A DNA stretch of 64,000 nt from Macrostomum lignano (GCA_002269645.1 NIVC01001525.1:1-64000); one strand, 5' to 3'. Positions 4,707-57,911 are shown, counted from the stretch's first letter. The notes: generated by a model from the letters alone, not told the origin. Numbers and translations are program-made.

Positions 4707-4809
4707 ATGTATCTGCTTTGGAAGTATCCTCAAAAGCCGTTAATTCTTCTTCTGCTGCTGCTGATATCCTGCTCAACATTGAGCGGTCAAGAAATATCGC
4801 CTCCAGTAG
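4707..4809 (+). CDS. Exon 1, signal peptide
   Basis: MYLLWKYPQKPLILLLLLLISCSTLSGQEISPPV, then a phase-1 G|GTAAG donor matching the phase-1 acceptor at 6586. Confidence 0.8.
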
Positions 4810-7800
4810 GTAAGCTACGAGCGTGCTGTAGCCTTGGTTTCTATGGGAAATTATTTAATATTTATCTCACCTGCGAACAGCAGCCTGTTTAATGATCACA
4901 TCGGCAGGGGCTGATAAAACCATTACAACGTACATGAAAGCTTAGGCTTACGGCAAGACAGAGCGAAAAGAATTGGAGAGAATAGTGTGCAACCTTCCCG
5001 ATGCCCGTACGAGTACAGAATATCAGTTAGTTAGTTAATCTAGAGTTCAGCAACCAGATACCAAAATTTCTACTATTAAAAGCTCACTCTGTATTAATAA
5101 CCAGAAAATTATTATCAAAATAATTATATATTTCCGGTTCCAAGGCTAAAACACACATGTGACAATTCTACAGATATTCGGTGTCCTATTCATTGAACAA
5201 TTGTAAGGACTCTGAACTACATGTATAAAGCAAAATCATGGCGGAGAAAGGCATGAATTCTTATCAGCAAAATAGGGGAATTACTTTTCTCTATACATGG
5301 TACCTTAGTTCGACAATTTCTATCGGCTATGGTGAAGAGGTCCACCTTAGGCCTTTTGTGGACACCATTCGCGGTTAGGTATTAGCAGAAGTGTATATTG
5401 GGAGTAATCCATTCTTTGAATGAAGACGAACTAATTTGAAAGCTTGGCATATCGCTTGATATCGTCTTCCTAATCACTTTCACAAGCTCGAAACTTTATA
5501 AGCAGAAAATCAGTCAACTTTCGAAGCTAAAATTTAGCAGGGAAATTCATGACTCTAAAAAGCCTTACCTAGTTATTTGAGCCAGTAAAACCTAAAAAAT
5601 GAAAGACTTGAAATTTTCCTGTGAACTGCTTCTGATTTTTTTTCACTAACTGAATGCGCACTGTGAGCTTCTACATGTAAATGTGTGTCCAAAAATAACT
5701 ATTAATAGGCCTTAGAAACAGTTCTCTTTCTTGACAAAGGTCTTAATCGATGAGCATAGAAGACAGCACTCATACAAATTTATATTTAACTTTTATTGTG
5801 CAACCTTTTCGACCAGCAGTTTCGCAATAATCTGCGCTACTCAATATTAGTACATGTAATGCGATATTTTTATGCCCACTTATTTTATTTCATTAAAAGC
5901 AGGGTGCGCTTTCAGCGACATTGTCACACAGTCGATGAGAGGCATTAATGCCAATACGTACGGCGTTATATGCACAGGCACACACTCACACAGGAGTGTA
6001 CATCGGCTAACTTTATTTCTCATTAGGCATATACGCTTCACTGTGCCTCGGAAGTTGGGCCTCAAGGGCATTAATTGCCTCGTTGAAAACGAGGGTTAAT
6101 CTTGAAAGTAAATTAACAAAAAGTAACTTCTGGTTAGTTAATTTACCACAGTTTAACTTTCGAAAAAGTGGATTTACGTTAATTAACCACAAACACTTTG
6201 TACGTTAATTTCGGTTAATAAACTCATAAATTAACGTAAATTTACCCTCCATAGAGTAAAGTAACGTCAATTAACGTTTATTCGCCTAAATTCACACGTT
6301 AGTCAACCTTCAAGCTATTGGTTAACTAACCCCACAATATTAGCCCTCGTTGTCAACGGGGCACAATCAGAGCCAAGCCGAGATTCCAATTCAGCCCTAA
6401 ATTAATGTGATTGCACTTGGAATCGAGCCTGGGCCGCTGGTACATCAGAGCTCTTATCGATCCCAAACTGTGGGGTGGGAGATCAGTTTTTATCCCGCTA
6501 TCGATTTTCAAGGCGGCTTCGTTTCGATACATGCCTTCCTTCCTTGGGCATTAAATGCACTCCAAATCGATTCGGAAAACTTCAGGAAGCATCCAGCTCG
6601 AGAGACTCGAAAAAACTGCCACCGGATTCGGTCGCAACGTCCCATCTGGAGCGTTGCTATGGCAACCAGTCTCCGCGTCCGACGACCTGCTGCAACTTCC
6701 TATGGGAAGCTTGTCACCCGCCAGATTGTCGCTAACCTCCGACGTCACTCTGCGCTTCTTCCTGCCGATCCGCTTCAACTTGACCGGCCTGCTGTTGCGC
6801 GGCTTCCCCGACGTGGGGCGGCGCCAACCGGCTTCTCCGCCGCCGCTTTTCCCGGAAACAGCCTGATTAGCGACTCACCGAAAGTTTCGGTAAAACTGAA
6901 CGCGTAGAGCTACTTACAGCAACTTTTTTTAACATGAATTATCTAGCTCGTACATTTACAGTAAATAAGACTAAGGAACCTAATATTTTCCCCTGATTTT
7001 GCACTCAACTGAGTATCATTCAAAAGAATTTTGACGCCTAAATTGTTTTTTTTGGAAAAAATATCGACGTTAACCTTCCTAATAGCTGAACTTCGCTTCT
7101 ACAGACTACAGATCTACGTTCACTGATAATTTTTACTTATTAATGATCATATTCACTCATAGATGGCCAAAATTTAACTCAAAGAGTTAGAACTCGCAAA
7201 GATCCAATTACAGTCTTTGTGAGCTTCTGTGTTTTAAGTGCACCTGAGGTACTCCAGAGTAGCAAAAAGTGTTAGAACCGACTGTCTCTCAATGAACTTG
7301 CTTTTCCAAGAGTAATTTATTATTAAAGAATAACCGACAGTCTCTTTGGCTTACACTTACAACTCAACCGATTTGCATGACACAAAAGCCAGTCAGCGTT
7401 TCTTCGTCACTTAAAATGACTTCACCACAATAAAAAAATTCAGACGACTTACCTGCCGATCTACTCTAGCGAAGGCTTCGCTCCAGTTCGGTTTTCAGCT
7501 GCTCAAAGAGCTCAGCTGCTGCAAGTGAAGTTTGGTACATCGAGCGGCACACGTCGGATGCAGATGGATCTCATGGGCCACCCTGATCCAACAGGTGCGA
7601 CTTTTACTTTGAGATTGAGACACTCACTTGAGGGCTGATTGCTCAAAAATCTTGAGTTGGATTTTCTCTCCAGCCGCGTCAATTTTTGGTTCGCTCTCTC
7701 AAAAAGTGGTCTGGGGCTTTTCGTGCTTTTAGTTTACACCTTCGATGGTAGAAGGTTGCCTAACAAGTGAGGGGCCAGATCTCTTACACAGTTTCTTTGC

Positions 7801-10800
7801 ATTGATAAGTACTTTTAGGCGGACCACTAGTCAAGATCAAAACGTTAGGATCCATCCGTCTACCGGTATTGACCTTGCTTTGCGGCTGTACCTAAACGCT
7901 TTTTAGAAAATGACTACCTATCCAACCAAATATCCAACTCCAGCTTGTGGCGTCATTCCAAGCGAAAAATACTCGGCCAGCTTGCTACGACATACCAGCA
8001 ACAGCGTGCTTGCCATAAGTTTCGATCGCAACTCTACCTACCACGTGACATCATTCGCGCTCGCGGGTCTCAACGCCGATTCGAGTTTTTGGCTGTCTTT
8101 CGCTGATACAGCTGGTAGATTCAAGAACCTCAGCATCCTGCAGCACAGTGGGAACAGTAATATCTCTGGCCTGGACCCATTCTTGGTAAACCAGTACTCG
8201 ATTTACAATGAATCAACGTTTTGGCATGTACACGTAAAATTTCCTTACCAAAATCCGAGAACTTCAATTCCAACACACAGTTCGTGAAGACATTCAACCA
8301 GGAGACTTTCGTCATGCCTCTTCTGCTCCCAGTTCGTCAGCTACGAATCCACTTGAGTACTGAGACTCTTGTGACTACCGTTGACCAGATCAGGGGTTGC
8401 GAGCTGACAGGTAGATTCTAAACTCTCTCACGTGTCCAATAAGCAGCGACCTGTCAATCTGTCAAGTCAATTACTTTCTTTTAGACTGCCCGGTAGGTTG
8501 GATCGAGCACCTGAACTCCTGCATCTCCATTCAGCACGCTCGCTACACCTGGGATCAGGCCAGGGACTTCTGCAGCCTTATTAGTTGGAACGGAATCAAT
8601 GCCAGCCTCTTTGCTGCTAAATCGGCCTTTGACAGGAACATTGTGCAACTCGGGTGAGATCATTGGTACCTTTAATAGTACTATTAAAGCTGAGAATTAA
8701 AGGGGATTTCAGTATACAGGATAACTAAGCAGTTGAAATCATTCATTTAAAATTCAATTTCATAAATCACTGGCAAGCTGGTGAATATCTGTCTATCTGT
8801 ACTACATAGTAGTCTGTGTGAAATGCGATTAGTTTTGTCAGCTTGTGCTCCGCAACATTCCGGACCAGACTTATAAAAAGCAGCTTTGGTATCTTGCAAA
8901 TGGTAGATTCACCACTTACCATCTGGTGCGTGGGTTCGATCCCTCATCAATATCGAAAATCCTAGCCAGTAGGTTTTGTGCGATTTATGCTTATATACTC
9001 AGCAACAGTCAAAAGTTTCATCCTCCAAACGAGATGAATTTTTTTCACTTATTGCGAGTGACGCAACTTACGGCACGCGCGAAGCTTATTGCCACTTGGG
9101 AGTGGCATAGCTCGTAATGGTCCAAGATGACAACGCGCCGTGACACTGAGCCGATGCTGTTAGTCAACTGAAAGAACAGCTACAGCTGCGCACTATGCGC
9201 TGGCCTTCCCGGTCCCCAGACATGAATCCCATCTAGCATGTCTGGGACTTCCTAGAAACGCTGCGCTCGAAAAGAAAATTCACCACACAATGTTGCAGAG
9301 CTGCATCATGCCCAAGGACCACTAGAAGTAACTTCTAGAAGTTACACTAGTGAAGTTACACTAGTAACTTCTAGTGGTCCTTGTTCATGCTTTGAAAACG
9401 CTTGGCAGCAGCTTCCTCAGGACTTTCTGCGCCGCCTCATCTTGAGGATGCACCGCAGAGTCGCCGCACTTTTGCGTGCGTGGAGATCCCACACGCGTTA
9501 TTAAGCATCGCAATTCTAACTGAATATTTCATAAAAACTGTTATAATTTTGTGCGAAATACGTTTATTGATTTAATCAACTTTCCCTTCCTCGCGGTGTC
9601 TTAGCTGCCTAACTGGAGGGTTGAATTGTGAGTGAAAAGTTGTCGCAATGCTCTCGCTTGGAAAAATTTTCATCTCGCTTGGTGGTTGGAACTTTTGACT
9701 GTTGCTGAGTATAAGTGCTCAGCGGTCTCACCGGGTGGTCATTGTTGGCTGCGAGCTAGCTCGAGCACCCTGCGAGCTAACCACACGTAGTTGATACTCC
9801 GCAGTTCCTTCCCAGCTTCGGACGACCAGCAGCTATTTGTTGGGTCAGTCAGAGACCCGACTACTCAGCAGTGGCAGTGGTCTGACGGTTCCCCCATGGA
9901 GCCGGGCGCGTTCTTCATGGGCCGCCCCTCCAAGCGGTGCGCGGCTCTGAGCGTCAGGTTTGCTGCTCTCGTTGAGGTCAGCTGCTCCATCAAGCTGGAG
10001 TTCGTGTGCCAGCTGCCAAAGTACATTTCGCCGTACCGGACTAAGCAAAAGGTGCTGGTCACCGCGCCAGCACCTGCTCAGTCAACGACCGAGAAGATGG
10101 CCAGTCTGGGTACCGGACTCGCTGCTCTTGATGAGGCAGCCAAGCTCCTCTTCATCGACTCATTTGCAGCATCAGCTGCTGCAATCGAGCTGAATACTGG
10201 GCTGACCGTGACGGCAGTGGCTGGAGCTGAGAATGCAGCGTCTGTCACTGCGAACTCGGTGCACTACAGAGTTGCCGAAGTTCACCGAGGTGAGAACATC
10301 TCAGACTGGCTTAATTTGTGTAAGCAAGTTCCAAAGTTGCTAAGAGACACATTTTCGATCGTGCTCCTCCTCAGGCTGCTCGGAGCCTCTACTCCCATTA
10401 GCCGCCATCGACTCAACTGGCGAGCTGCCGTTGCGCCCAGCGAATCGAGCATTTCTAGGAGCCGCTCAGGCCTACGAAGGTAGCGAATGAACTAATTAGA
10501 ACAATAATTGAAAAAACTAAACCTTACAAAATCTGTGCAAATTTCAGACCACACGAAATGCCAGATGGGCTACCGGGACTTTGGCTACTATGATTACGGC
10601 TGGTCGATGAGTCAGCTGGATGGAGGCCCGTGCACCCCGTGGCCTCCTGGCGAGCTAGCGGGCTTCGACAGGTCCTGCGTGTCCACGGCTGTATCTCAGA
10701 TTAAATGCTCCAATTTCACTTCTCAGGTGTCCTGCCTGAGCTCCGATATTTTGTGTGGTAAGCTCTTGCGTTTCTTTATTTCCGAGCCGAGTATCACAGC

Positions 10801-13800
10801 AGCTCATATTAATTTTGACTTTGAAATTAACCAACCCTTAATATAGCGGACTTTCACCAGCCAATCGATGACTTCAATCCTGATAGCGTTGGTCACATCG
10901 GCTTTGACAAGGACTACTATTTGAATGAGGTTTCAATCCAGGCGACTCAATCAGAGGAAGAGACAACGCTGGAAGGCGAGGCAGAAATAGCTGAGAATGG
11001 TGACTACTGGAGACGGGTGGTCGATCTAAAAACCGACCACGAGATCATCGGATTTAGAGCTTTTGCTGGTGAGAGAAGACGTCGTGCTTTGAGCTAATAA
11101 ATCATTCGATGAATTGATTTTTTTATCTGCTAAATGAAGAAACATTCTAGCCCCTGAATGGTTCCCCAGGATTCCCGCCCCTTGACCATTTTTGCTTTGC
11201 TAAACTTTATTCTCAAACAAGAATAAAGTTGCCAAACTGCCTCTGATCAAGTCTTGACAGTTTGCCAGCCTCAACTGCTAGGTACCCTCACTAAGTCTCT
11301 CAAGCATTCAGTAGTCATCCAGACGCCATCAGCTCCTTCAACAGATGGCACCAGTCGACTATGAACACTCTATCGCAAATTTCTCTGATGTCGCTGACCA
11401 AGCTTCAAAAGCGGGCAAACTTCCAACTTCCATAGCGGAGAAACATTATATGAACTAATTTCTCATGCATCGATTCATTAAACAAGGAAAAAGTCGCCAC
11501 ACATCCAGACCGCCAAGGTATTCAACTATTCTTTAAGAAAGCTTGACTTTTTCCGTAAGCGCTAATGTATTAAGGACAGTACATTCAGTACACCCATGTG
11601 CGCATATTAGCGCTGTCGTTCATTATGGCCTTGCCAAATCTTGGCAGATTTTAACAGTTCGTCGACCACATGTGTCCGCATCATCCCTGACTTCGGTGGT
11701 CTCTGGCTTTGGTTTAGGCAATGTTTCCGAAGTTTCAAAAGGTGGCAACATTTTAGTCGCTTGCTGACACTCAGTTGCACAAATATCACATCTTACTGAA
11801 TGGAGCCCTAGTTTACCTGGATAATTGCACCTTAAAACTTCCGCAAAGCATGCAAACCCATAATTGTACCACGGCAGGGATCAGCTACATCGGCTGTTTC
11901 CAAGACTCCGGAGCTCGCGACCTCCCCCTGTGGCGGCTGACCTCCGGCACAACCGTCAGCGTGTGCGCTCGGGTGTGCTCAAGATATCTGTACTTTGGCA
12001 CGCAGTGGTATGCTCACTGCTTCTGCGGAAACTCCTATGGTCGGCACGGCCGGGTGGCCGAGTCTCGGTGCAACAACCGGTGCAGGGCGAATCCAGCCGA
12101 CATGTGCGGCTCCTGGTTCAAGAGCAACATCTTCACCACTGGCCGTTCTAGTGCGTGCATGTGGAAGAAGGAGGATCAAAACATGTCTTGTTTAATCGAC
12201 ACAAATTTATCTCATTTATTGTTAAACTGCCGCATTCGGAATCAACATTGACTTCTACTAAAGTTAAAGAAAGTTTAATCAGCCATTTTCAGAAAGTGTA
12301 AAACATCATTGACCCTATTCACCTAAGCAAGAGTTTAAAAAACACCCATTTGCCGCTCCTGACTCTCTAGTGTCTCAGAAGCCCTAGCGTGTTTAATATT
12401 TTATTAGAAACTAAAATCTTTGTGTAATCAACTCTTACGATCCACTGACATGACAATAATTCTTCAGTGAAACCTTGGAGCGCCAACAATCTGACTGTGA
12501 AGGTTGGCAGCAGCTGGGATCCAACCCTGAAAGACGACGCTTTCAAGAACTGGACAGAATGCGCCACGTTCAGCTACCCGGAGTCGAGCTCCGACTCGCC
12601 ACTTCAGCTGCTGTGCCGCGGTCGACCAGTTGGGAGATTCGTGGCTTTCCTGCAGGGCGTCTCGGCCGGTAGGCACGGCTGGAAACAGCTCAGGCTGATG
12701 GGAAACGAAGGTAGGTGGCGATGCTGGCCATTATTTCTACAAGTTGGCTAGGAATGCAGCTAGCAGAGTACAGTGCTGACACTGTTAGGAGTGACTCTCA
12801 GTGGCTGCAGTGAGGGTTAGACGCTGTTGGCGAGTATGATAGCAGCATGTGTTAATGACAATATAGAAAATCAATCTATAAATAACCTTGAATTGGGTCA
12901 TCGATTTGCAACCGTCGATGTACAAGATTTCATTGGATTTCGGTGCTAACAAGAATTTAGACGCCTGACTATATTTCCGAGTAAATATTTTCATTAAACT
13001 CGCATGTGAAAATTTACAATACTTCAATATAGTGAGGCTGCACGATCGCCAGCTGCTGCCACGGTTTCTAAAGCGATTTCCCGAGCCGCTGACGCGCAGA
13101 GTTCGGCTGGATGGCAGACTAGATTTTCAGGCAAGACTCGGGACAAGTTCGCTCTGGGTGTACCTGACGGCCCATTATGAGCAGAGCGACATTCTACTCA
13201 ATGTAAGCCTCATACTGCAGTTATTATATACTAAAGTTTAAATACACGGATCTGATTCTGTCCTGTTTTGTCATTCCAGGACAGATATGAGCTGCTGCTA
13301 TCAGCCAACCGGTCTCACCTGTCCCTAACATGGCACTCTGTGCGCTCTGGCCGAGTCACTGTGACGCCAGACTTACTCGGCACCCCATTATTAACTGAGT
13401 TGAGCAGCGAGACAATCAGCTGCTCGACAGATGGGTTCCAGCCAGTCAGCATCGCATGGACCAATTCTTCATCGGAGCCCGTACAGATCTCCGTGTACGT
13501 GTGCGGGCGTTCGCTTGCGGTCGTCAAGGACTCGGTAGTCCGGGCATGGAAAATATCCCAGGCTGCCTACTCATGCGGCAGCAGCTCAAAATGCCCACAG
13601 TTGGTTTTCGACATCATTAGTAAGTTGGCTGGCTTGCGATTTCCAACCGAATGCTGTAATCGCAATAAAAGTTTTGACACTTTTCAGATGACCGTTACAT
13701 GGGTTTCTGGACTGCGCCCGGCTGGTTCAACAAAGATTACATTGAGGTAAAGCAGAGAAATCGATCAAACTGAAATATCAACAGTTTGTAAAAATTCAAT

Positions 13801-34800: not shown

Positions 34801-37800
34801 GTGATGCTAGTGATGGTTGGCGATGGAGATGCAGCTGTGAGACAAAATGGAGTCGTCAGGGGCTCAGCAATGCTAGTTCCGTAAGTATCTATTTAGAAAT
34901 TCCAAAAAATATTGTTAATTTCATTAATATTTTCTCTTTCAGAATAAACACAACCGAAATTGTACTGAACCTGAGCGTTTGCGAGGCATCGCGCTACATC
35001 TGCGTTACAGTTGAAGCTGGAACCAACGCGAGCTACAAAGACCTTGCGCTCGAAAACAACTTGCAATGTACTCCGATTTCCTTGAACTGTACGCCTTATG
35101 CGGATGTGAGCATGGCCAACTCATTAACCTTCGTGGCTAATGGCAGTTGGCTGTCACAATACCCAGCCTTGCTTGTAGTCGATCACTCGTTTTATCTGCA
35201 ATCTGGAGTTCCAGTAGAGCCCGTGCCGGCTGGAACAAATCGCACAAACTTTGAGTTTCAATTATTTCTAACAGACGAAAACTCAACTCTCCGTGTGCCA
35301 TCATTAAGGACTGCAGTTTGTGACGAGGCTGAGAAGCGACAGGGACTCACCCACAACGCGACTGTGACGTGTCAATACATGTTCAACGTGTCGAAGACTG
35401 TGTGTCCCATGCTCAGTCTGCTATGCTCAGAACTGTTAATTGGCTCAGGCGCTTCTTACACCCAGTCTGTACCAGCAAACAATATTCGATGCAGTTCTCT
35501 AGCAGACAGAATTTCTTGCCGCGACTCTCCAATAACCAACTTTTCCTGCTCATCTCTGACACAACTGATTCTGGAATTTAACTCAACAGTTCAACTGCAG
35601 CTTAGTTGGTCATCTGGGTCTGCAATTCAAACGAATGTCACATTCGAAAGAGTTGGTTCCGTTGTTTGGAACTGGAACACAGCAGGTCACGTGCACAGCT
35701 TTGCGTCATATATACAGTCTATTTCGTTTGATTTTACCGATCACGTTGGACACTTTAATGTTTCCTGCGATGCTTGGAACGACGCTGGTTTCGTCTCAAA
35801 GCAGCTGGAGTTAGAAGTTGTTCCAGATCTGAGTAGCATTCTAAGCGTAACGCTTCCGGCTGTAGAAACTCCCGCGCCTGTCAAACAGAACCTTACATTT
35901 CGAATGCTGTATGGCAGCGATATTTCTGCCACAGAATACTCCTGTCTGCTTCAGACAAAATATTTAGAAGTGAATTTTACGGATCTAACTCTGAAGAGGA
36001 GCGAGCCACTGTTCGTTCCTATAGAGTTCCTAACCGATGTTCCATTTTTGTTATTAAATGTCTCCTGCTGGAACGCCCTGTCGGTCAGAAATAATTCTCT
36101 CTACGTCATCCTGCAGCAAAACATTACCGGCTTGCGATTGGAGGTCTCACAGCTGCTGCGAACTTATCAGTTTGGTTATTTAATGATCTCAGCTGAAACT
36201 GGCTCCCACGTAAATTTTCTGGTCAGCTTTAGCAACGGCAGTACACTCGATATTAATTCAAACCAGTCAGTGCATGCTCCCACACAGCTCAACCTGTCAC
36301 TTCTGTTTTCGAGTCCCGGAGTTCACACGATAGAAGTCACTGCTACGAATTTCCACACCCATGCAGCTCAATCAGCAATTGTCATTGTTCAAGAGCCAGT
36401 AAGCAACCTTACAGTGTCTGCTCCGCCGTTTGTGAATGACTCACAACTCGGCCTGACTGCCCAAGTTGGCTTTCTTCAGCGAATGCCTACAAACGCCTCG
36501 TGCAATGCAACATTCGGGAAGCAAAGCAGAACATGGAATGTGGAATCGCTCACGATCGAATTGAACTTCACCTGCCAGGCTGAAATCACAGCGAGACCTT
36601 GGAATCTCACGCTCAGCTGCTCAAACCTGGTGAGCTATGAAGAAACCCATACTACTGTATTCTGTCAGCAAAGCATTCAAGGAGCAAGAGTCTTTGGACC
36701 AGTGGCTCATCCGGCTGGCAGTGAGCTCAGTCTAAAACTCAGCTTTGATCGAGGCTCAAATATCCTTGTTGTGACACATCTCGGCGACTCCGATATAAAG
36801 AATATGTCCCTTCTGTTTGGTAGCACACAATTTATAAATCACACCTATGCAGACGCGGGGAACTACACCGTCAGAGTACTGCTCTACAATCAGGTCAGCA
36901 TAGTAGAGCTCTTGTTCGGACCAATAGTTGTTCAGGAAACTATTGCGAATGTCGAAATTCGATACCCGCACACAGTGCTGTACACTCCAGCAATTGTCAA
37001 CTTCAGCTTAAGTGGACCAGCATACAGAAATGTTCACTGTCAGTTCAGATTTTCAAAGTTTGGCTCAGGCTATCTATATATTCCCCAACTCAATGAATCT
37101 GCTTTGTTCGAGCGCAGCTTCCCTCGCGAAGCGCTTGGAGCCTGGAACTTTTCGGTGAACTGCTCCAATATGGTCTCGTCGTGGCTAAAAATTCTGCCAG
37201 TGTTCATTGAGCTGGATGCCGTCATCATTGAAAATTTACAGCCAAACGGTACTGCGTTCTACACTAACGCTTCTTATATGACCCTAAATATAGCCAGGTT
37301 TGGCACCCACGGCTGCTTTGTTGTCAACTTTGGTGACAACTCTTCTGGTGAATCTTTCGGTGCTGCAGATCTGTGCGCACCGTATAGTATGCGAGTTGGT
37401 GCCAATTTCACTAAACTACCTTATGATACTCGGATAGTGCATCTTCAGCATACGTATCCGGCAATCGGTGAATATATAGCCACTGCTTTGGCGTTCAACC
37501 ATGTTAGCAACGACACGGCTCAGTGCTCCATCATTGTCAACGACTGGTACTGCGAGCGTCCGCTCATCAACTTCACTGTCAACGGAATCCTGGTGAATCT
37601 CACTGACCCTACTGAACTCCCGCCAGAGATCATGAGGTCATCCGATGTAATCATCGAAGCCCTTCCGTTCATAAACTGCTCAAAAACATCCATCACAATT
37701 TGTTCCTGGTCAATAAAAGATTCGGCAGGAAATGAGCAGAACCATTTGTCATATCATGATTCGTTTACTTTCAACATCTCGAGGCTTAGTCTATGGTACG

Positions 37801-40800
37801 GAAAGTACAGAGTGTCACTCAATGTATCGATGTCGGGCGTTCAGCCTCCAGTGTGGTCAACCTCACAGCTGACTATCAACATTGTCAAGACGCCGATTAA
37901 GGTGTCCCGTATCGACGGGCCAGAAGTTGCGGCTTACAACAGCACGCTAAGCCTAAGTGTTGCAAACTCTACTCGCGACTTTGATGTCAGCGAGGGAAAT
38001 CTTACTGGCTTCAAATTTTACTGGGCGTGTTGGAGAGATGGATTGGAGGAGCCTCCAAAAGTTGACATGCTGCTGCCGAACATCACTGCACCATTAGTTT
38101 CCAATTCCAAAGTCTTTACTGGCTGCTATGGAAATGGTATCGGCCTCATCCATAGTGGGAGTGCAGCTACCATAGAAATTAACACCTATCACATGCTTCC
38201 AAACCACTCTTATGCCGTTCGAGTCACAGCCCAGAAAGACAGTCGCCAAGATGCCGCAATTTTGAATTTGTTAATTCGGCTACAGCCCGCGGCCATTCTA
38301 AGCATAAGGTAGAAAATATCATGTCCGAGTTAATATATGCTACCAATCTGACATGTATTGCTGCTCATTATCTCTGATTACAATCATTCCATTTCAGCTG
38401 CATCAAAAACTGCGACAAGAAAGTGAAGGCTTCGAGAGAGCTGCTTTATCAGGTTTCTTGTGTTCAGTTCTGTGGAACGAAATTCTCGAATGTTACATTT
38501 TCTTGGATAATAAGGCTCACGACTGATACTTTACCTCAGAGCAAGTTATTTGCTGGTAATTCATCTTTAATTGATATTCCCAGCAGTTCCCTCATCGAGG
38601 GTGGCGTTTACTTTTTGACGGTTCAAGGATCCTGCAAATGGTGTGACGGAGATACCTTAATAACGACCGCCCTCGTCGTGAACATTGCACCATCTGGAGG
38701 CAACTGCACTGTTGCTCCGCTGCAGGGATTTGCAATGGTGACAAAGTTTCAGATCTCCTGCTTTGACTGGAAAGAGTTTAACGTCACAGTCAGTCAATTA
38801 AACTACGAGTTCCGGGTGCGCCAGAAAGGCAGCAGGCGCAGCATTTTGCTGTTCAGCAGCTCCATATCGACCTCGCCGCTGGTTTTCTTTCCAGTTGGAT
38901 CAGAGACCGACGAATATCGGGAAGAGATTGTCGTGGCTGTTTCCGACAGCCTTGGAGACTCAAGAAATTTCGTATTTCAACTGCAGGTAGGTGTTTTATC
39001 TGGAGTATTGCTGAAATGTTCCTGCTACCGCACTTGAACTTCTTACTGACACTTTAGGTGTTTCCGCCACCTGTACCTGCTGAACAGCTAATCACCAACA
39101 TCAGCTCAATTTTCAATGGAGAAAACGACGAGCTTACAAAATTCCTGGACACTGGAAACCAGCAGGCAGCTTCCACGACTCTCATTTGCGTGGTGTCAGT
39201 TATGAACTCGCGTAACGATGATGCCGAAAGTGCCAATGCGAGTCAGTCGCTTAGGGAATTTTTCACCGAACAAATGTCTCAGGTAGGACAGATTTAGGAA
39301 TGAAAGCAAGCAGCTTAAACATATACGGCATCTGTAAATATTCCTTTCAATCTGAAAATTTTCAGCTCAGAACTCGCTACGTCAGCATCGTCAGTCAGTT
39401 TGCTGTAAACACAACCAACTCACTTGAGCAGACTAGTGAGCTGCTTAGAAGTGGAGCCGCCGAAAATCGAGTCACTCAGCTAGACATGACAGCTCAGGTA
39501 TTTAGTTATTAATTGTGTTTTCAAAAAATTTCTTAAAATAAAAATAATAACGAAATCATATAACTTGTTGGGAATGAGTAAGCGGGTAAGTCTTTCTTAT
39601 ACTCGTAAAAAAACAAATAGATTTTAGACTAAGTAATATAGGCAGAGAGCCAAAGCCAACTTACCTCTAGATTTCCTGTCTAAACATCGGAATGTACGTG
39701 TCAGGGGGATTCAAATGCTTCGCTTATTTTATTACATCATCGGCGCTGCCTCTGCCCCCAGCAAAATGTTCTAAGTAATTTGAAACACATCCCCCGCGAA
39801 CACCGTTCAGAACCTCAGCTCCGGAAAGCTAGCAGAAGTTTCACTAAAGTACAAGGAAATGCGACACAACTTGACAAATGATGGCCGTTCGCTCATGGCC
39901 GAAGGTTAGTAAAAAACTGAATTAGATGAATATAGTGAAGACTGTTCTCTAATTTGAGCAAATTTACCCTTTTAGACCTGGTACTGACAGGATCTAACAT
40001 CTGGCTGGCATCCAGCCTCTCAATGAGGGCGGCAGAGCTGGCTGACAACAGCAGCTGCGAGTCCATAAGCTGCAACAGCAGCCTCGCTGAAACAAGACAA
40101 ATGCTGCGTACCGTGCTTGAGAAAGCCATCGACTCAATCAGCAGCATAACCGAAGATTTAATCACCGATTCAAATCAATACGCGATTTCAAACAACTGGA
40201 TCTCGGCAGTGGGCAGTCGAGGTACCAATTTGAGCTTCGAGGCGCCTCAGGGCAGCGTACAGATCGATGAGCCACCCCCTAGTGACTGCAGCAATGACGG
40301 AGGCATCAAGGCTCTTCTATCCCGCAAGAACCCATTTTTATGGCACGAGTCCTCGGCCTCAGTAGCATCCAGTGTACTTACAACTCGCCAAACACTGTGC
40401 GATCAAAGTTTACCCTCAAATACATCCTCTCGGGTCAGGCGTTCCGCTGTCTCTCAAGCATTTGCGGCCTCTTTGCTCATGTCCGTGCCAGATCCAATCA
40501 GCATCAATGCGACACCGTCGGACAAATGGCTGCAGATTCAGCACTCGTTTTCCATAAACAGCAATCAGCGGGTGATAGTTTTCCTGCAGCCACTTCAGCA
40601 GGGGCAAACTTTTGACATATTTGTGGCATCAGGGACACCACCTAATCCTCAAAAACACTTGTTAAACTTCACCTTGCCCAGTAACAAGTCTGTTAACTCA
40701 CAAGAGTCAACACGAATTCTCATCACCCCTGGACTTCTAAACGCATCAGCTACCAACTACATCAGCGTCAGGCGTCACGGTTGCTCGAGAGACCCGACTG

Positions 40801-43800
40801 GTCACGTGACTTGCTCCGATCCCACAGTCGCTTACAACTTCTCAATCATTGAGCTGTCCTGCAGGCATTGGGATGCTCTGGCGGCCTCGTGGGTTTTGCT
40901 GGGCCCAGAAAGCTGCCAGCTTGCAGAAGTGGCGGATACAAACAGAGTTTCCCTTCGATTCAATTTGCTTGGCAGCATTGGTGTTGGTCTCAATGTCTCA
41001 CCGAATCTCATCGACTTTGGCAGTCTTTTCAGCAACTGGCAGGGCAAGCTGGCCGACAGCGCGGCAGTCGTCGCCACCGTGGTAACTTTGTGGCTTATCT
41101 TCATTCCCATTGGTGCCATTTTGAGACGGGCTGACAAGGGAGATAGAATACTGGTTAGTTGTTTTGTTTTTAATACTTTCCTGCGAACACAAAGTATAAA
41201 AATCCAAAAAAATCTTTCAGTTTACCTACGAGCCACTAATAGATGACAAAAGTCTGGCACAGGTCTACCTTATCGATGTATTCAACGGAAAACTTGACTG
41301 CTGCATTCAACAGATCTGTATGACTGTTGTTGGAACAAAAAGCACAGAAAGTTCCAGAATTCTTGACGACGGAATCCGACAGGTGAGCTATTCTCAAAAA
41401 GCGTTTTGTTATAGACTTGCTTAACTAGATTCACATATTGATACGAAATTTCAGAGCTTTAAGAGCAGTTCTATCGATCGGTTCCGCATGACGACAAGCA
41501 GCAATCTAGGGGATATTCTCAAACTGCAACTGCAGCTGACTGCCGTGCATGAGGAATTGGAGCTCTGGATGCCGAGAAAGATCGTTGTCACCGACACAGT
41601 CACTGGAGCCATGTATGAGTAGTTTCTAAAGCCTGATAAATAAATCACTTTGGTAACGATGTCTAAAAGACTTAAAAGTACCATCTGTATTTAATTTTAA
41701 GGTACTTCTTCATACCGGACACCCCACTGACCGGTGACGGACAACCTGCATCAATTTATCTGTCCTCACAAGGCGATTTGAGACGTTCACCGGGTTTCCT
41801 CCGCCACAACTTTGGCCGCAAGCTCGAGGACGAGCACTTGTGGGTATCTGTGATGAAGCGATCTACTGAGACAAATTTCTCCAGACTGCAGCGCTTCACC
41901 ACCTGCTTCAGCGCACTCTTTATCACCATGGTGACGAATGCAATGTTCTTCGGAGTGGGCGATGCGATATCAGCAGGCCAGTCGGACCTCAAGCTTGGGC
42001 CGCTGACCATGTCAGTGGGCTCTTTGATTGTATCCGTGATTAGTGCACTCATTGTGGTGCCCGTCACTGCTGCCATCACGCTGATATTCCTAAAGTCAAG
42101 GCAATATCAAGAATCGGACTCTGGTAGTGGTGATTGGCAGCCTTCTCACCAACATTCGGACAGGCAGAATATCTATAGTGTAATTGAGGTAGGTATTCCT
42201 CCAAAATTATCGTATGTTTAACAAGATACGCAAAAAGATTTCGTTTACCTATTTCAGAGCGAATCTGATGAATCTGCAATCGAGTGGGACAGCCTGGAGT
42301 GCACCCCCATTCAGCCTCTAAAAGAGACAACTAAGCCAGTTCAGCTTCCTTACTGGTGTCAGTTTATTGGGTGGTTCATAGCGCTCAGCACCATCATTGT
42401 ATCAGGAGTCTTTATCGTTTTCTACGCAATGGATTGGGGGCAGGAGAAGTCGCAAAAGTGGCTGCTCTGCTTCATTCTTTCGTTTCTGGAAACGGCCTTC
42501 CTCATCCAGCCCATGAAGGTAGTCCTCATTGGATTCATATTTGTCATCGTGATGCGCAAGGACAGCGACGTAAAAAATTCGGAGCGCGTCAGGGTGATGG
42601 AGATCGACGAAGACGATAACTCATGTACGTATGTGAGTGAGAATAGCTTAATGTAGACAGGAGAATCACATTGTTCTCCATTTCAAATTGCAGGTCGCGT
42701 CTGCTACCTAAGCGAGCTGCAGAAGAAACCGCAGCCAGAAAAGCAGGCAGTGTTTTGCCATGGGCTGCAAGCCGGTCTGAGCCTTCTACAGTTTGCTCTG
42801 CTTTGTCTCGCCAGTACAGGCGCTGTCGACACTCGAGCATTTCGGTTGCACAGCAGCCTCTTGAATCATCTCAATTTGTCCTGTCTGCAGTCAGCCAGCG
42901 TTGCCAAGGCAGTGCTGCCTTGTCTATCCGAGTCTGTCGTTCCAGCGCTTTTTCCTACAGAGAGGTCGGCTCGGTCTGGGTTCATTGCTGACAATGCGGG
43001 CTTCCTGCTTGGATCACCTCGCCTGAGCCGAATTCAAAGTGCCGACTCGATGCAGTCAGCAGCCTTTGCATCGCAAATCGATGCCAGCAACGCTACAGAA
43101 GCTATCGATCTGCCAACCAGTTTAAATGCGACCATCAAAATGCTGCAGTCACTCTCTGATTTCAATTGGCTGAATGCCAACACAAGGAAAATCAAGCTGG
43201 GACTCAGCTTATTTTATCCAGATGCCTCTCTGTTCACTTACGCTGTCTTCACCATCAACTGTGAGTCTTTCGGAGGCTGCGAGTTGACTTGGAACATGGA
43301 CTCTGCACCGCTCAGTCGCTACGTTGGTGTCGTGGGTATCGTCCACCTCTGCGCTGACTGCCTGGCCGCTTTGGTGACCGTTATCTGCATTGGAGCTTCA
43401 ATGTACACCGCTGTGACTCTCGGATTTAAAGTGTTCGCTACATCTGGCTGGAACATCCTGGCCTTGGCGGCATTTGTGTTAGCAGCGATAGCCTGGGTCT
43501 GTCTGCTACTCCGTTGCTTGGCGTCTACTAGCGTCTCAAATCTACAGGCTGTGATGCAGTTGGATCGGCAGTTCTGCAACTGCCTCGCTGTCGCCACCTT
43601 CTTGCTACAGCTGCGGCTGCTTCAGCTGGCTAGGCTCACCCGACACCTGAGGCACCTTGTCGCCACAGTCAGCTGCTGTTTGACTCAGTTGGTTGCCTAC
43701 CTTGCTCCGCTGTCTCTGGTTTTTGCTGCTTTTGCCTGCCTGTTCTACCTCTCCATGGGCTCTCAACTCCGTCAATTCAGCTCGATGCCCGCCACTCTGC

Positions 43801-44292
43801 AGCACCTCTGCAACGCTGCCCTTGGGGCATCAGATTTTCGCAACGTTATGCAGCGGAACATCCTTAACCAACTCTGCTATCTGGGCTTTGTCTGCTTTCT
43901 TATTCTGGTGCTGATGAACATCTTCGTGGCTGTCATCAACCACGGCATCGGTTTGAGCAAGTCAAGGACAGACAACGAAGATCCGGATCAGCAGCTGGCG
44001 AGCTACATTGTTGAAGGTCTTCGCAATATTTTAGCACCCAGGAAGCATCGAACTAAACGGCTGAAAACTATTGGTGAGTGAATAGCCGTCTGTAAGGTTT
44101 AGGCCAAAAGTTTTGGTTCAGGCTTTGGGTGTTTCTTTAGCGGCCCATTTCCGCTTTAATTCCGCAGACCCGAGCAGGCAGTTGTCAGCATCCGTCAGTC
44201 GCCTGACAGCAACTTTAACTAATCTGGCTGGGCCATCATTTACGACAGCTGAGCAGGCCATTAGACGGGTAATCATCCCGGACAATTCATGA
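4707..44292 (+). CDS. Giant multi-exon polycystin-1-like (PKD1/REJ family) gene with lectin-fold ectodomain array
   Basis: ATG 4707 opens a signal-peptide exon. Most GT-AG joins traced by hand are phase-compatible through discoidin, CLECT, F-type lectin, kringle-like, WSC, fibrinogen-like, PKD, REJ, GPS, PLAT and channel domains to TGA at 44290-44292. Joins near 11.2-11.8, 12.2-12.5 and 12.7-13.0 kb are unresolved; three joins need +1 nt. Confidence 0.72.
5895..6475 (-). mobile_element. tRNA-derived SINE-like repeat, interrupted by a MITE
   Basis: Shares AGCGACATTGTCACACA, GCACAGGCACACACTCAC.CAGGAGTGTA, AAGCC.AGATTCCAATT.AGCCCTAAAT and TCGAGCCTGGGCC with 14220-14550; B-box-like GGCTCGATTCC on the minus strand. 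Confidence 0.65.
6088..6351. mobile_element. AT-rich MITE-like insertion
   Basis: 13-bp terminal inverted repeats AACGAGGGTTAAT / ATTAGCCCTCGTT (1 mismatch). Its left 26 bp recur at 56294-56319. Confidence 0.6.
6586..8410 (+). CDS. Module 1 discoidin/F5-8C-like exons
   Basis: Exons at about 6586-6889, 7444-7594, 7944 onward and 8281-8410 give FNLTGLLLRG, RMQMDLMGH, YHVTSFALAG and RQLRIHL...QIRGC, which are discoidin-type ends. Confidence 0.6.
8485..10289 (+). CDS. C-type lectin domain 1 plus linker (exons 8485-8653, 9805-10289)
   Basis: CPVGWIEHLNSC...WDQARDFC joined in phase 2 to LFVG...WQWSDGS...C...FVCQ. Confidence 0.85.
8996..9711 (+). mobile_element. Internally deleted Tc1 (DD34E) element
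   Basis: TA target duplications; TIRs TACTCAGCAACAGTCAAAAGTT; remnant 9114-9504 reads QDDNAP*H*...WPSRSPDMNPI*HVWD...AWQQLPQDFLRRLI...RY* with 34-residue spacing. Confidence 0.92.
10548..10757 (+). CDS. Kringle-like exon 1
   Basis: Six Cys with a C...GY...GGPCTPW pattern; phase-1 boundaries. Confidence 0.55.
11878..12150 (+). CDS. WSC domain exon
   Basis: YIGCFQDSGARDL...C...C...YFGTQWYAHCFCGN...C...C......CG; a single exon with phase-1 boundaries. Confidence 0.9.
12468..16227 (+). CDS. Module 2 exons: F-type lectin, Methyltransf_FA-like, F5/8C, F-type lectin, F5/8C, short discoidin-like
   Basis: LLCRGRPVGRFV; YELLLSANRSHLS; FVSMQGG...FSTDG; PELRWMLYGC; LRVYEIEVYG; FSITGLIIRG...GYVTSL; MLKLDLIGY. 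Confidence 0.65.
14220..14550 (-). mobile_element. tRNA-derived SINE-like repeat
   Basis: Minus strand starts GTAGCCCAGTGGTCTAG (A-box-like) and CCAGGCTCGAGT (B-box-like); a second copy lies at 5895-6475. Confidence 0.7.
16308..16910 (+). CDS. C-type lectin domain 2
   Basis: CPVNFIPHAGICFHL...WESALRMC joined in phase 2 to LHVG...WEWLDGS...FACQ. Confidence 0.85.
17536..17810 (+). CDS. Kringle-like domain 2 (two exons)
   Basis: CILG...TVSGEACIPW...NQC...PSC...QCIASNC; six Cys ending in C-x4-C as in kringles. Confidence 0.6.
17901..22399 (+). CDS. Module 3 exons: F-type lectin, Methyltransf_FA-like, F5/8C, F-type lectin, F5/8C, short discoidin-like
   Basis: NLAIGRP...LMVDL...LGRFV...SELQVYG; PEFRLELFGC; LATDG...HWWQVSLG...LCEFEVYG; WLEVWL...VTGLVMQG...LRFELLGY; IEIRGC. 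Confidence 0.75.
18135..18420 (+). mobile_element. tRNA-headed SINE with Nin/Deu-like central domain
   Basis: A-box-like TAGCCTATAGTG and B-box-like GCTTCGATTCT, then GTGTCCTTGAGCAAGACACTTAA...TGTTCACCCAGCTGTAAAATCGGTCCC, which resembles the Nin/Deu core as I recall it. Confidence 0.7.
22474..22994 (+). CDS. C-type lectin domain 3
   Basis: CPIG...KCYW...ARSIC...GHLASM joined in phase 2 to YEWWDGSPVLWNNW...C...WTDVDC...FLCE. Confidence 0.9.
23150..27150 (+). mobile_element. Degenerate Ty3/Gypsy retrotransposon in an intron (gag-PR-RT-RNaseH-IN)
   Basis: gag FVGRLKRQANKCTFG; PR LLDTGS; RT FLQIPL...SYQDD; RH ICDASKDGLG...EREALA; IN LHKTHSG...YFRWP and PKSWVTNNG...SNRQVER. Domain order is Gypsy-type; many stops and frameshifts. 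Confidence 0.92.
24334..25140 (-). mobile_element. 5'-truncated mariner (DD34D) nested in the Gypsy RT
   Basis: HHDNARPH...PYSPDLSPADF with 34-residue D-D spacing; one end TA|CGAGGGGTGTCCCAAAAG; the other TIR is missing. Confidence 0.92.
27564..30129 (+). CDS. Module 4 exons: linker, two F5/8C, short discoidin-like, C-type lectin 4 (29621-30129)
   Basis: EWLMVSF...KLELIGC; YAVSTRGNGSSYVTDF...LQIDILGF; KLRFFGC; CPVNYAYFRGRC...AKSLC...W...DC...W...C...VVCE. Confidence 0.8.
30430..31500 (+). mobile_element. Ty3/Gypsy pol remnant (RNase H to integrase) in an intron
   Basis: FEIVTDHKPL, IIRYLHSG and PDVLVTD-like motifs in broken frames. Confidence 0.75.
32039..33598 (+). CDS. Linker, F5/8C and fibrinogen C-terminal-like domain exons
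   Basis: IKLELFGC, then WTGLNAI...LRID...G...FRV...NGSSFSARD...GSGWW (fibrinogen-related signature). Confidence 0.8.
33869..34133. mobile_element. Tc1-family MITE
   Basis: Ends TACTCAACAACATTGAAAAGTC / GACTTTTCAATTTTGCTGAGTA|TA; internal AGTGACGTAACTTGCGCCAC is identical to 47356-47375. Confidence 0.75.
34178..38986 (+). CDS. Three Cys-bounded Ig-like repeats, about 7 PKD repeats, and REJ (exons 34178-34880, 34943-38308, 38398-38986)
   Basis: Phase-compatible joins; PKD-type G.yNV.v.a.N..S repeats with QEPV/QETI linkers; REJ motifs FYWAC, CIKNC, PSGGNCTVAPLQGFAMVTKFQISCFDW, YEF. Confidence 0.9.
39058..41153 (+). CDS. GAIN/GPS region and TM1
   Basis: SCRHWD...W...SC...FNLLGSIG...VSPNLIDF, then hydrophobic TM1 and RRAD. 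Confidence 0.85.
41221..41760 (+). CDS. PLAT-like domain (degenerate)
   Basis: YLIDVFNG...ICMTVVG...FKSSSIDRF...NLGDILKLQL...W...IVVTD, positioned after TM1 as in PKD1 family members. Confidence 0.75.
41702..44292 (+). CDS. Polycystin transmembrane/channel region and C-tail (exons 41702-42188, 42258-42624, 42694-44073, 44168-44292)
   Basis: HLWVSV...FSRLQRFTTCFS...NAMFF; LPYWC; KWLL...QPMKV; LLGSPRL; WLNANTR; S4-like LRLLQLARLTRH; LMNIFVAVIN. Confidence 0.92.
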
Positions 44293-45007
44293 CGATTTCA
44301 CGTTTTTAAATTCAAGATTAAGAATTAATAATGACTGGCATATGAAAATAAGACAAGTAACATTTTTTGCTTTTTTGTTTGCAAAAATCTTCGCGTAAAG
44401 CACATTTTTATAAATATTTCCATAGTGTAAACGTAAATGCGCTTGTTCACGGCTATTAAAAGTTTTGTACTTGTAATCTGTATATCAAAAGAGTTACAAA
44501 AACATTAAATATTGAATGTCAATTCGTTTCCTCCGGTTTTAGGGCAGGTAATCATTATTATTGCAATAAACCAAACAAGCCACAGGTAAAAAAAGTAAAC
44601 AATGATCTTATCTAATAAAAACTCTTGGAACACACCCAGTTCTTCATTTACCCGTAATGTTGCATTGTCTTAAATTGATACTGATAAATTTGGGCTTCTT
44701 AAACAGCTTATTATATCACCAATAAAAAGCATGATTTGAGCAATCATGGTAACTTACCTGGTTTGCCACTTTGCAGTCCTGAATTTCTTTTTTCTGTCAC
44801 CAGTTTCTTCAACGATCACCTTCGCAGTCAGTTTTCCTCCGGAAAGAATGACCCGTGTCACTAAGCATGCCGATCAATTCTGCAGGTTAAAAGCTACCTG
44901 CATGCAGATATGAAAGTCGAAGAGTTGAAGTTTGCAGCTGTTAAACAAACTGCATAGTAACTGAATGCTACAAAGTAATACTACAAAGTACTGAGCTAAC
45001 ATACGCT

Positions 45008-48687: not shown

Positions 48688-50522
<1,835 letters not shown>

Positions 50523-57880: not shown

Positions 57881-57911
57881 CATAGTAAGACCCGATCCCT
57901 GACCAGCCAAC

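Follow-up and report, generated by a model that had tools for sequence, protein, structure and literature searches.

A probable single gene of Macrostomum lignano for a polycystin-1-family protein of about 7,000 residues with a large modular ectodomain

The window analyzed here is a stretch of 64,000 nucleotides from the flatworm Macrostomum lignano (GCA_002269645.1, NIVC01001525.1:1-64000), and its subject is a chain of exons on the + strand, from position 4,707 to position 44,292, whose 3' part encodes a polycystin-1-family protein. The original prediction, made from the sequence alone, had proposed at this place one polycystin-1 of about 7,000 aa with about 21 kb of exons. The window is eukaryotic, and between 4.7 and 44.3 kb its + strand shows open frames split by GT...AG gaps of ~70-90 nt with TTTCAG-type acceptors. 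The Pfam families PKD, REJ, Fibrinogen_C, Polycystin_dom and PKD_channel were found on the largest of these frames, which makes the 3' third a polycystin-1-family gene. Since Pfam gave half-domains only on unspliced frames, a spliced model was required. The exons were joined with a splice-aware dynamic-programming chainer. It weighs coding sequence by codon log-odds and splice sites by donor and acceptor matrices retrained on the short introns of the locus itself, keeps track of the phase and checks split codons for stops.

The coding chain obtained runs from an ATG at 4707 to a TGA stop at 44290-44292. Once retroelement remnants had been masked, it comprised 73 exons, 21,045 nt of coding sequence and 7,014 aa, in agreement with the size and span predicted. 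The chain built before masking had 75 exons and 7,097 aa and the same end at 44292, so that the model versions cover 21.0-21.3 kb of exons, 73-75 exons and 7,014-7,097 aa; masking left the score unchanged (982.1). Single small exons may be wrong; the whole chain is robust. In our opinion the best explanation, and a likely one, is a single gene for a polycystin-1-family receptor or channel subunit of ~7,000 aa, with eleven transmembrane (TM) segments and a large modular ectodomain. The exons of the final model are the following.

Exons 1-9, + strand: 4707-4809, 6586-6812, 7444-7594, 7944-8185, 8260-8410, 8485-8653, 9805-10289, 10375-10479, 10548-10757
Exons 10-18, + strand: 10847-11068, 11878-12150, 12468-12710, 13033-13202, 13280-13619, 13688-13746, 13818-13967, 14034-14175, 14464-14584
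Exons 19-27, + strand: 14668-14864, 14948-15081, 15151-15250, 15323-15693, 15805-15955, 16032-16228, 16308-16606, 16699-16910, 16991-17260
Exons 28-36, + strand: 17340-17465, 17536-17679, 17748-17810, 17902-18120, 18479-18718, 18835-18995, 19099-19506, 19588-19743, 19815-19962
Exons 37-46, + strand: 20054-20293, 20378-20517, 20598-20685, 21247-21429, 21504-21694, 21773-21917, 22013-22203, 22273-22399, 22474-22690, 22771-22994
Exons 47-55, + strand: 26993-27082 (doubtful), 27564-27803, 27880-27996, 28072-28274, 28344-28977, 29046-29230, 29406-29538, 29621-29813, 29888-30129
Exons 56-64, + strand: 32371-32522, 32613-32813, 32872-33598, 33679-33822, 34178-34880, 34943-38308, 38398-38452, 38540-38986, 39058-39282
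Exons 65-73, + strand: 39366-39497, 39811-39904, 39976-41153, 41221-41382, 41455-41612, 41702-42188, 42258-42624, 42694-44073, 44168-44292

Exon 1 (4707-4809, + strand) encodes a signal-peptide-like leader, MYLLWKYPQKPLILLLLLLISCSTLSGQ, and the phase-1 donor that comes next, at 4810, scores 3.7; the signal peptide proposed earlier is thus supported by a hydrophobic leader and a good donor. Forcing the start to this ATG cost one score unit and gave 7,086 aa in the model built before masking. When all ATGs between 4400 and 44300 were scanned, no other one combining a signal-peptide-like, strongly hydrophobic segment with a usable donor was found between 4400 and 41000. At the other end, AATAAA motifs lie 270-430 nt 3' of the stop. 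The 72 introns are short (median 80.5 nt, 56 of them at most 120 nt), and phase 1 accounts for 39 of them, phase 0 for 25 and phase 2 for 8. A surplus of phase-1 introns is the expectation for shuffled extracellular modules.

One would wonder whether such a long chain could be made of chance open frames, or stem from an assembly chimera, with no real gene over most of the interval. That about half of the ectodomain units have no database match could be read in this sense. However, the chain scored 983.6 on the + strand, whereas the opposite strand reached 60.3 over this interval and three shuffles ~9.5, a contrast somewhat inflated by the training of the parameters on the + strand, yet very large. 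Moreover, significant Pfam and Protein Data Bank (PDB) matches occur along the entire interval, and paralogous modules agree in the positions and phases of their introns. This explanation is already contradicted by the present results and appears extremely improbable.

The ectodomain begins with a long series of modules. To describe them, Pfam was run on the spliced protein and each putative unit was also scanned alone, with E up to 10; C-type lectin-like domains are abbreviated CTLD and hidden Markov models HMM.

6586-15250, + strand: module A (model aa ~46-1343), recognized by Lectin_C (E 1.4e-7), internal BLAST links and a discoidin-unit HMM
Module A, first half: discoidin-like unit G1 6586-7594; X1 7944-8410; CTLD1 8485-8653 and 9805-10024; an Ala-rich linker; six-cysteine unit K1 10548-10757
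Module A, second half: V1 10847-11068 and G3 12468-12710, beta-sandwich-like halves flanking the WSC exon; U1; discoidin-like G4 13583-14175; G5 14464-15250
11878-12150, + strand: WSC domain (Pfam E 1.5e-13; PDB phmmer match to the Kremen-1 WSC domain, E 8e-4)
15323-20685, + strand: module B (aa ~1344-2553), paralogous to module A
Module B, units: discoidin-like G6 15323-15955; X2 16032-16421; CTLD2 16422-16910; V2; six-cysteine unit K2 17536-17810; G7 17902-18718; U2; discoidin-like G8 19366-19962; G9 20054-20685
21247-22994, + strand: first part of module C, with discoidin G10 21247-21917, X3 22013-22399 and CTLD3 22474-22994 (F5_F8_type_C E 3e-8, Lectin_C E 1.8e-6)
27564-30129, + strand: second part of module C and module D, with Cys-rich W3 27564-27908, discoidin G12 27909-28508, discoidin-fold G13 28509-28977, X4 29046-29538 and CTLD4 29621-30129
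32371-33822, + strand: weak discoidin-like G15 32371-33000, fibrinogen-C-like domain 33001-33598 and EGF-like six-cysteine exon 33679-33822

Four CTLDs are present, as had been predicted, three of them found by Pfam Lectin_C and CTLD2 by PDB phmmer. Lectin_C matched CTLD1 at model aa 322-428 (E 1.4e-7), CTLD3 at aa ~2867-2972 (E 1.8e-6) and CTLD4 at aa ~3587-3655 (E 4.8e-3, together with the CTLD cysteine and WIGL-type pattern); two scores reach 32.6 and 29.1 bits (cut-off 22.6) and the third 18.1 bits. For CTLD2, the Lectin_C signal is weak (aa ~1647-1714) and the PDB search gave NKR-P1B with E 2.5e-7. The sugar-site motifs EPN, QPD and WND are absent from all four domains, CTLD3 reading EKQ...WTD there, and the functional name of lectin is consequently not justified for them. 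The WSC domain and the fibrinogen-like domain of the original prediction were also recovered by Pfam, the latter as Fibrinogen_C with E 2.3e-8.

The case of the discoidin units, about ten of which had been proposed, is more graded. The spliced protein contains two Pfam F5_F8_type_C copies (E 3e-8 and 3e-7), namely G10, with 34.2 bits in context and 22 bits alone, and G12, with 29.0-31.2 bits, for a cut-off of 28.2. Five further units (G1, G4, G6, G8 and G13) are tied to G10 and G12 via internal BLAST, with E from 2e-13 to 2e-3; the linkage of G1, G4, G6 and G8 to discoidin is through internal BLAST only, and G6 gave a weak PDB match to lactadherin C2 (E 0.018). G13, which is encoded by a single exon, was modeled with AlphaFold2 (pLDDT 64, core 70-88), and its best Foldseek matches were the C2 domains of factor VIII and factor V, neuropilin b1, the CASPR2 discoidin domain and lactadherin C2 (E 7e-8, TM-score ~0.58), the alignment used for this model consisting of nine discoidin domains from homologues, which biases the prediction toward the discoidin fold. 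As for G15, it remains weak, with 8.8 bits against an HMM built from the other seven discoidin-like units.

Two other proposals could not be confirmed. Four F-type lectin folds had been suggested (V1 with G3, G5, G7 and G9), and for them neither Pfam, PDB phmmer, phmmer against Dimorphilus domains nor hhalign gave a match above threshold. The sole addition from the unit-by-unit Pfam scan was a sub-threshold PF22633 match of G9 (14.9 bits, E 0.04, cut-off 27.8). Compared with the PF22633 domains of Dimorphilus, these units reached 6.9 bits with phmmer and a probability of 2% with hhalign, and no F-lectin was matched in the PDB. The candidate units have an EVYG-type ending and G9 carries xDG and HWWQVSLG, the likeness being confined to such short motifs (xDG, HWWQVSLG, LCEFEVYG). 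Likewise, the two kringle-like domains K1 and K2 come down to a common six-cysteine pattern, with 27% identity between them: neither had a Pfam Kringle match at E up to 10 or a PDB match, the loops are shorter than those of kringles, the NYCRNPD core is missing, and AlphaFold2 produced an unusable model for K1 (pLDDT 38). No family match was obtained for the four X units (~105-130 aa, each located before a CTLD), U1, U2, V2 and W3.

A comparison of the protein with itself revealed a large internal repeat. Modules A (aa 46-1343) and B (aa 1344-2553) share 29.8% identity over 1,076 positions in a global alignment, and 11 of the 21 introns of module A have a counterpart of equal phase in module B, at most 2 residues away. 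This identity and these shared intron positions and phases point to an ancient duplication of a multi-exon block of ~9 kb, and the intron match also provides an independent validation of many predicted splice sites. Modules C and D are further copies of the same core, in which a discoidin unit is followed by an X unit and a CTLD; this order occurs in three full copies, and the fourth consists of an X unit and a CTLD right after discoidin G13. All module boundaries lie in phase-1 introns that join in frame. The WSC domain occupies one symmetrical phase 1-1 exon (11878-12150), found in module A only, where it forms an unaligned insertion relative to module B with phase-1 introns on either side. 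In module B, a phase-1 intron (18121-18478) divides the paralogous unit G7 and would be the equivalent of the WSC exon site, though the alignment is gapped there. The WSC domain is thus apparently a textbook exon insertion between the V1 and G3 halves of a beta-sandwich-like unit. As this exon is symmetrical, it could also be skipped in frame.

Downstream of the EGF-like exon, the protein takes the form of a polycystin-1.

34178-36137, + strand: Cys-rich region of ~630 aa that separates the EGF-like exon from the first of the PKD repeats detected
36138-39144, + strand: PKD repeats (E 6e-16 on the large exon, at least three separate stretches) and REJ domain (E 5.9e-48)
39145-41051, + strand: GAIN-like region next to the membrane, its degenerate GPS reading VSLRFNLLGSIGVG at 40947-40988
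41064-41120, + strand: TM1 (hydropathy)
41221-41759, + strand: PLAT domain (Pfam E 5e-5, 24.4 bits, cut-off 23), between hydrophobic segments 1 and 2
From there to 44292, + strand: TM2-TM11, polycystin (TOP) domain, TRPP channel domain, C-terminal tail and TGA stop (Pfam, hydropathy)

Membership of the polycystin-1 family follows the usual marks, with PKD repeats, a PLAT domain after TM1 and 11 TM segments including a TOP domain and a TRPP-like module. The REJ domain scored 164 bits for a Pfam cut-off of 25, and was already visible in an open frame (38378-39034, E 1.9e-31) overlapping the exons 38398-38452 and 38540-38986. In the membrane part, Pfam detected Polycystin_dom (E 1.3e-6), PKD_channel (E 7e-15) and Ion_trans (E 2.5e-10), and the Kyte-Doolittle profile shows ~11 peaks from aa ~6094, the TM count being approximate. 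In the ectodomain this profile shows a single N-terminal leader, no hydrophobic segment from aa 30 up to the PKD region, and a few moderate peaks in the PKD/REJ region from aa 4935. In a phmmer search of the PDB, the last six TM segments aligned with PKD2 and PKD2L1 (E 1.3e-20 for PKD2), and the stretch across TM1, PLAT and TM5 with the polycystin-1 chain 6a70_B (E 1.6e-17). In the alignment from this search, the PKD2 filter motif LGD reads LGA here (43818-43838). The Cys-rich region has no Pfam family and may consist of divergent Ig- or PKD-like repeats. It matched sequences from M. lignano (P0003, E 1e-26) and from the annelid Dimorphilus gyrociliatus (P0015, E 2e-39; P0006, E 6e-18) in phmmer. 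Of the PKD-REJ-GPS-PLAT-11TM order announced in the original prediction, the PKD, REJ and PLAT domains and the ~11 TM segments are found, whereas the GPS is missed by Pfam and lacks its cleavage triad.

Relatives of the protein were sought with HMMER among 1.84 billion representative proteins, using the last 1,195 aa as a query, and 2,706 matches were obtained at E up to 1e-3. Those looked up were polycystin-1-like, PKD1L2 and REJ-like proteins, or unnamed models with these domains. The best ones came from M. lignano itself (PAA69298.1, E 2.7e-174, 33% identity; fragments up to 48%), followed by Dimorphilus gyrociliatus and then by PKD1-like proteins of amphioxus, hemichordates, annelids and brachiopods. 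As no match exceeded 50% identity, that protein collection contains neither this gene nor any close orthologue. A word-prefiltered homologue search with a 1,177-aa exon and with a 1,584-aa C-terminal part had given 1 and 0 matches, respectively, and the relatives surfaced in the full HMMER search.

The closest resemblance in build is with two giant PKD1-like automatic models of Dimorphilus, DgyrCDS14438 (CAD5126282.1, 6,071 aa) and DgyrCDS14777 (CAD5126713.1, 5,543 aa). According to Pfam, CAD5126282.1 contains several F5_F8_type_C and several Lectin_C domains, PF22633, PAN_1, Fibrinogen_C, PKD, REJ, PLAT, Polycystin_dom and PKD_channel, and an EGF-like motif can be read by eye. With HMMs built from the window domains, CAD5126713.1 shows 3 CTLDs and 3 discoidin units and is collinear in BLAST into the PKD-to-TM part. 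Both share with the window protein the conserved Cys-rich region and a degenerate GPS (SNLFGS), and their BLAST alignments start at CTLD3 or at the fibrinogen-like domain and stay collinear up to the C-terminal end. In blastp, the order of P0006 is partly collinear with ours, from X and CTLD through discoidin and CTLD to the fibrinogen-like domain, the EGF-like domain and on to the end. The differences are a low identity (19-27%), a lectin part of ~2,500-2,800 aa versus ~4,100 aa here, and the duplication of blocks A and B, which is extra in the window gene; P0006 also has Pfam-detectable PAN and PF22633 domains, undetectable in the window protein, and no WSC. When the window-domain HMMs were run on the 150 best family representatives, three or more CTLDs together with two or more discoidin units turned up in the two Dimorphilus proteins and in no other. 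The earlier statement that no polycystin with this combination was known can thus not be maintained, CAD5126282.1 having it in one model and CAD5126713.1 being similar. The combination of lectin and discoidin units with PKD1 is rare and not unique, and is otherwise represented by unnamed automatic models only; in the literature, no paper describing a multi-discoidin/CTLD polycystin architecture was found. The M. lignano relatives PAA69298.1 (2,685 aa) and the UniRef entries A0A1I8JIH8 and A0A1I8JK18 are the best matches in the TM region (33-43% identity), remain collinear up to the last TM, starting at either the fibrinogen-like domain or the PKD repeats, and carry the same NLFGS variant of the GPS. 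On the other hand, these models are fragmentary and devoid of a CTLD/discoidin part, and with so low an identity they may be paralogues.

At the GPS (40947-40988), the window protein reads VSLRFNLLGSIG where relatives have C-x-C-x-HL(T/S)-x-F. In this site, RFNLLGS, the two cysteines, the His and the Thr/Ser are all gone, NLLG standing in place of HLT; in contrast, HLT or HLS is found in 63 of the ~66 family representatives with a true match there. Pfam GPS was not found in the spliced protein at E up to 0.1, nor was the autoproteolytic HL(T/S) of the family. GAIN autoproteolysis requires the His and a Thr/Ser nucleophile, and because both are lost, this group of polycystins is predicted to be uncleaved. 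The juxtamembrane region is homologous to its counterparts in M. lignano and Dimorphilus, and the variant SNL(F/L)GS is common to the M. lignano sequences P0002 and P0003, to the Dimorphilus sequences P0006, P0015 and P0026, and to P0008. Being shared by these relatives, the degenerate GPS is a trait of a subfamily rather than a sign of decay.

This bears on the possibility that the locus is a decaying gene, an ancestral giant broken by retroelement insertions of which only parts are still expressed. Two remnants, both in sense orientation, indeed occupy the two longest introns of the gene.

22995-27563, + strand (sense): long intron of 4.6 kb with a decayed Ty3/gypsy-type retroelement (Pfam), the remnant covering 23229-26702
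25639-25926, + strand: RNase H of this element (RT_RNaseH_2, E 9e-20)
26026-26262, + strand: its integrase zinc domain (Integrase_H2C2, E 4.5e-13)
26295-26702, + strand: its integrase core (rve, E 1.7e-5)
30130-32370, + strand: long intron of 2.2 kb with integrase-like debris judged by eye, the remnant covering 30405-31484

In addition, both the GPS and the pore filter are off consensus, and a segment in the second of these introns could be a damaged exon. This open segment (32039-32301), used in the original prediction, cannot be joined in frame through its best splice sites, and its coding scores are weak in both frames; it is possibly intronic, or else the damaged exon in question. Read as a PAN/apple domain (frame 0, with a frameshift), it was rejected, its alignments to PAN-like regions of Dimorphilus picked by eye and to W3 being no better than shuffles. 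Decay is nevertheless hard to reconcile with 21 kb of exons without any in-frame stop and with cysteine patterns conserved in all domain copies. The remnants themselves are heavily decayed, with broken frames and no long terminal repeats around them, so that the insertions must be old, and the flanking exons are intact. Given also that M. lignano and Dimorphilus relatives have the same degenerate GPS, we find a decaying gene very unlikely.

The junctions across these introns can be bridged in phase. For the splice from 22994 to 27564, this holds whether the doubtful 90-nt exon 26993-27082 is included or skipped. After CTLD4, once the repeat debris is masked, the donor at 30130 (score 4.2, phase 1) pairs in phase with the acceptor at 32371 (score 4.5), with no exon in between. 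An exon at 31173-31279, which bridged to 32148 in the first model, was rejected, since its LDGSNFLVIADAKQ...VLRRTYFNYGVPDVL resembles by eye a retroviral integrase core, and it was masked. Further on, the EGF-like exon bridges 33598 to 34178 through 33679-33822, with good sites and in phase, and a single collinear BLAST segment pairs model aa 3912-6424, fibrinogen-like domain through TM5, with the M. lignano sequence P0003. The splicing described earlier as mostly phase-compatible is in phase at every junction of the model, with good sites, including 30129/32371 and 33598/33679/33822/34178.

A different explanation is that two or more adjacent genes were joined, with one or several secreted multi-lectin genes from 4707 to ~22994 or 30212 and a PKD1-like gene from ~32371 or 34178, the 7,000-aa protein being an artefact of chaining. 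A number of observations speak for it and weigh against one giant receptor. The two longest introns, both retroelement-bearing, sit exactly between domain modules, and their sense debris could supply premature polyadenylation signals. When donor 30130 is read through, a stop comes after 26 codons, at 30210-30212, where a shortened, secreted isoform or else an upstream gene of its own may end. The homologue models from M. lignano are fragmentary and annotated solely from the fibrinogen-like domain on, and the tandem duplication of modules could equally mean tandem genes. Moreover, the chainer imposes one chain, so that phase compatibility is partly built in. The receptor itself includes about one half of ectodomain units without a Pfam family match, and its CTLDs lack the canonical residues for sugar binding. 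Set against this, the absence of a leader-bearing ATG with a usable donor from 4810 to 41000 means that a downstream type-I receptor would be leaderless. The module boundaries are all phase-1 introns in frame, and since a long intron (8654-9804) lies within CTLD1, intron length alone is no mark of a gene border. Finally, the two Dimorphilus models fuse lectin modules to the PKD1 core, and the order in P0006 is partly collinear. We thus hold adjacent genes to be unlikely, though well worth bearing in mind.

Hence, a single gene remains the best and most economical reading of the locus, because of its one signal-peptide-like start, the lack of a hydrophobic segment before the PKD region, its in-phase junctions and the two fused annelid models. 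Judging from the sequence, it is quite probable that one transcript covers it. A stronger proposal is that the locus gives one mRNA of ~21 kb and also belongs to an undescribed spiralian subfamily of polycystin-1-like "mega-receptors", present in Macrostomum and Dimorphilus and marked together by a discoidin/CTLD chain ending with fibrinogen-like and EGF-like domains, by the conserved Cys-rich region and by a GPS without autoproteolytic site. For this joint proposal, we see the chances as evenly balanced.

A parallel can be drawn with human PKD1 (4,303 aa), which similarly has a signal peptide, a WSC domain, a CTLD, PKD repeats, REJ, PLAT after TM1, 11 TM segments, TOP and a six-TM channel-like module. 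Unlike it, the window protein has no detected leucine-rich repeat or LDL-A domain and possesses four CTLDs instead of one, at least 3 detectable PKD repeats versus 16, and a GPS without the HLT cleavage site. It adds at least 7 discoidin-type units and fibrinogen-like and EGF-like domains, none of which exist in human polycystin-1. The sea-urchin proteins SpREJ1-10, also members of the PKD1 family and encoded by multi-exon genes, are involved in egg-jelly recognition; they are 1,450-3,716 aa long, with 0-2 CTLDs and sometimes a WSC, SUEL or EGF domain, and discoidin or fibrinogen-like modules are not reported for them (PMC1934368). In planarians, PKD1-like genes (pkd1L-1, pkd1L-2 and others) are active in ciliated sensory neurons and the pharynx and have been implicated in mechanosensation, and their products are smaller than polycystin-1, without a complex N-terminal ectodomain, which is said to exist in chordate polycystin-1 only (PMC11448475). 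Another report likewise places the expression of such genes in ciliated mechanosensory neurons (PMC12626421).

What could be the function of such a protein? After its signal peptide, it would expose an ectodomain of ~6,100 aa, the first ~4,100 aa of which would be a chain of modules grown by multi-exon block duplication. In this chain, discoidin-type and unassigned beta-sandwich-like units would follow the core, and fibrinogen-like and EGF-like domains would close it. The family core would come next, with the Cys-rich region, PKD repeats, REJ, the GAIN-like region, TM1, PLAT and ten TM segments including TOP and a TRPP-type pore. Because flatworm PKD1-like genes act in sensory cilia (PMC11448475, PMC12626421), one could assume that it resides in sensory cells, in their plasma or ciliary membrane, sperm being also possible, and that, like other members of the family, it would probably pair with a TRPP subunit of the PKD2 type. 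The ectodomain may act as a multivalent binder of extracellular ligands, be they matrix, surfaces, glycoconjugates or proteins, and ligand binding, mechanical load or shear may gate or modulate the channel. With its GPS triad absent, the ectodomain is predicted to remain covalently attached, without autoproteolysis. The glycan sensing put forward in the original prediction is weakened, as none of the four CTLDs carries EPN/QPD and WND, and a role in immunity would be speculation without specific support. By analogy with sea-urchin REJ, recognition between sperm and egg is a speculative alternative of lower but real probability.

If this is a single receptor, complex lectin/adhesion ectodomains on polycystin-1-family channels would not be restricted to chordates, and would have arisen or persisted in spiralians, growing by multi-exon block duplication and shuffling; with ~7,000 aa, the protein would rank among the largest of the family. 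The locus is in any case a clear example of shuffling, with phase-1 module boundaries and a symmetrical 1-1 WSC exon in one of two paralogous modules. The predicted non-cleaving GPS group could provide a natural comparison for the tethered-agonist model of polycystin-1 activation. Since Macrostomum is an experimental model with RNA interference and transgenesis, ligand-binding and sensory roles can be tested. No long-standing question is opened here, annelid models of the same build being already public.

Just upstream of the gene, the segment 2167-3258 (+ strand) has 53% G+C and overlapping long frames on both strands (up to 364 aa) with no Pfam match, and Rfam gave no match over the whole window. 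Downstream, satellite and microsatellite arrays lie at 45008-45770, 49945-50283, 59999-60329, 60984-63259, 57568-57880 and 63685-63997; they include a 10-mer repeated 78 times, (GACA)85, (GACT)83, a 32-mer repeated 68.5 times over 2.3 kb and two shorter 33-34-mer arrays. The open frames at 44877-45768, 49713-50534 and 59646-60524 were rejected as genes, being translations of tandem repeats in arrays open on both strands. A 137-aa frame on the minus strand (47422-47832) has HTH_23, HTH_7 and PAX matches and resembles the N-terminus of a transposase of the Tc1/mariner type. Finally, a coding exon at 57903-59021 (+ strand, 373 aa) is the first one of a gene for a voltage-gated potassium channel of the Shal type (Kv4); it has Shal N-terminal, BTB/T1 and Ion_trans domains and is 89% identical to an M. 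lignano protein and 72-78% identical to those of other animals.

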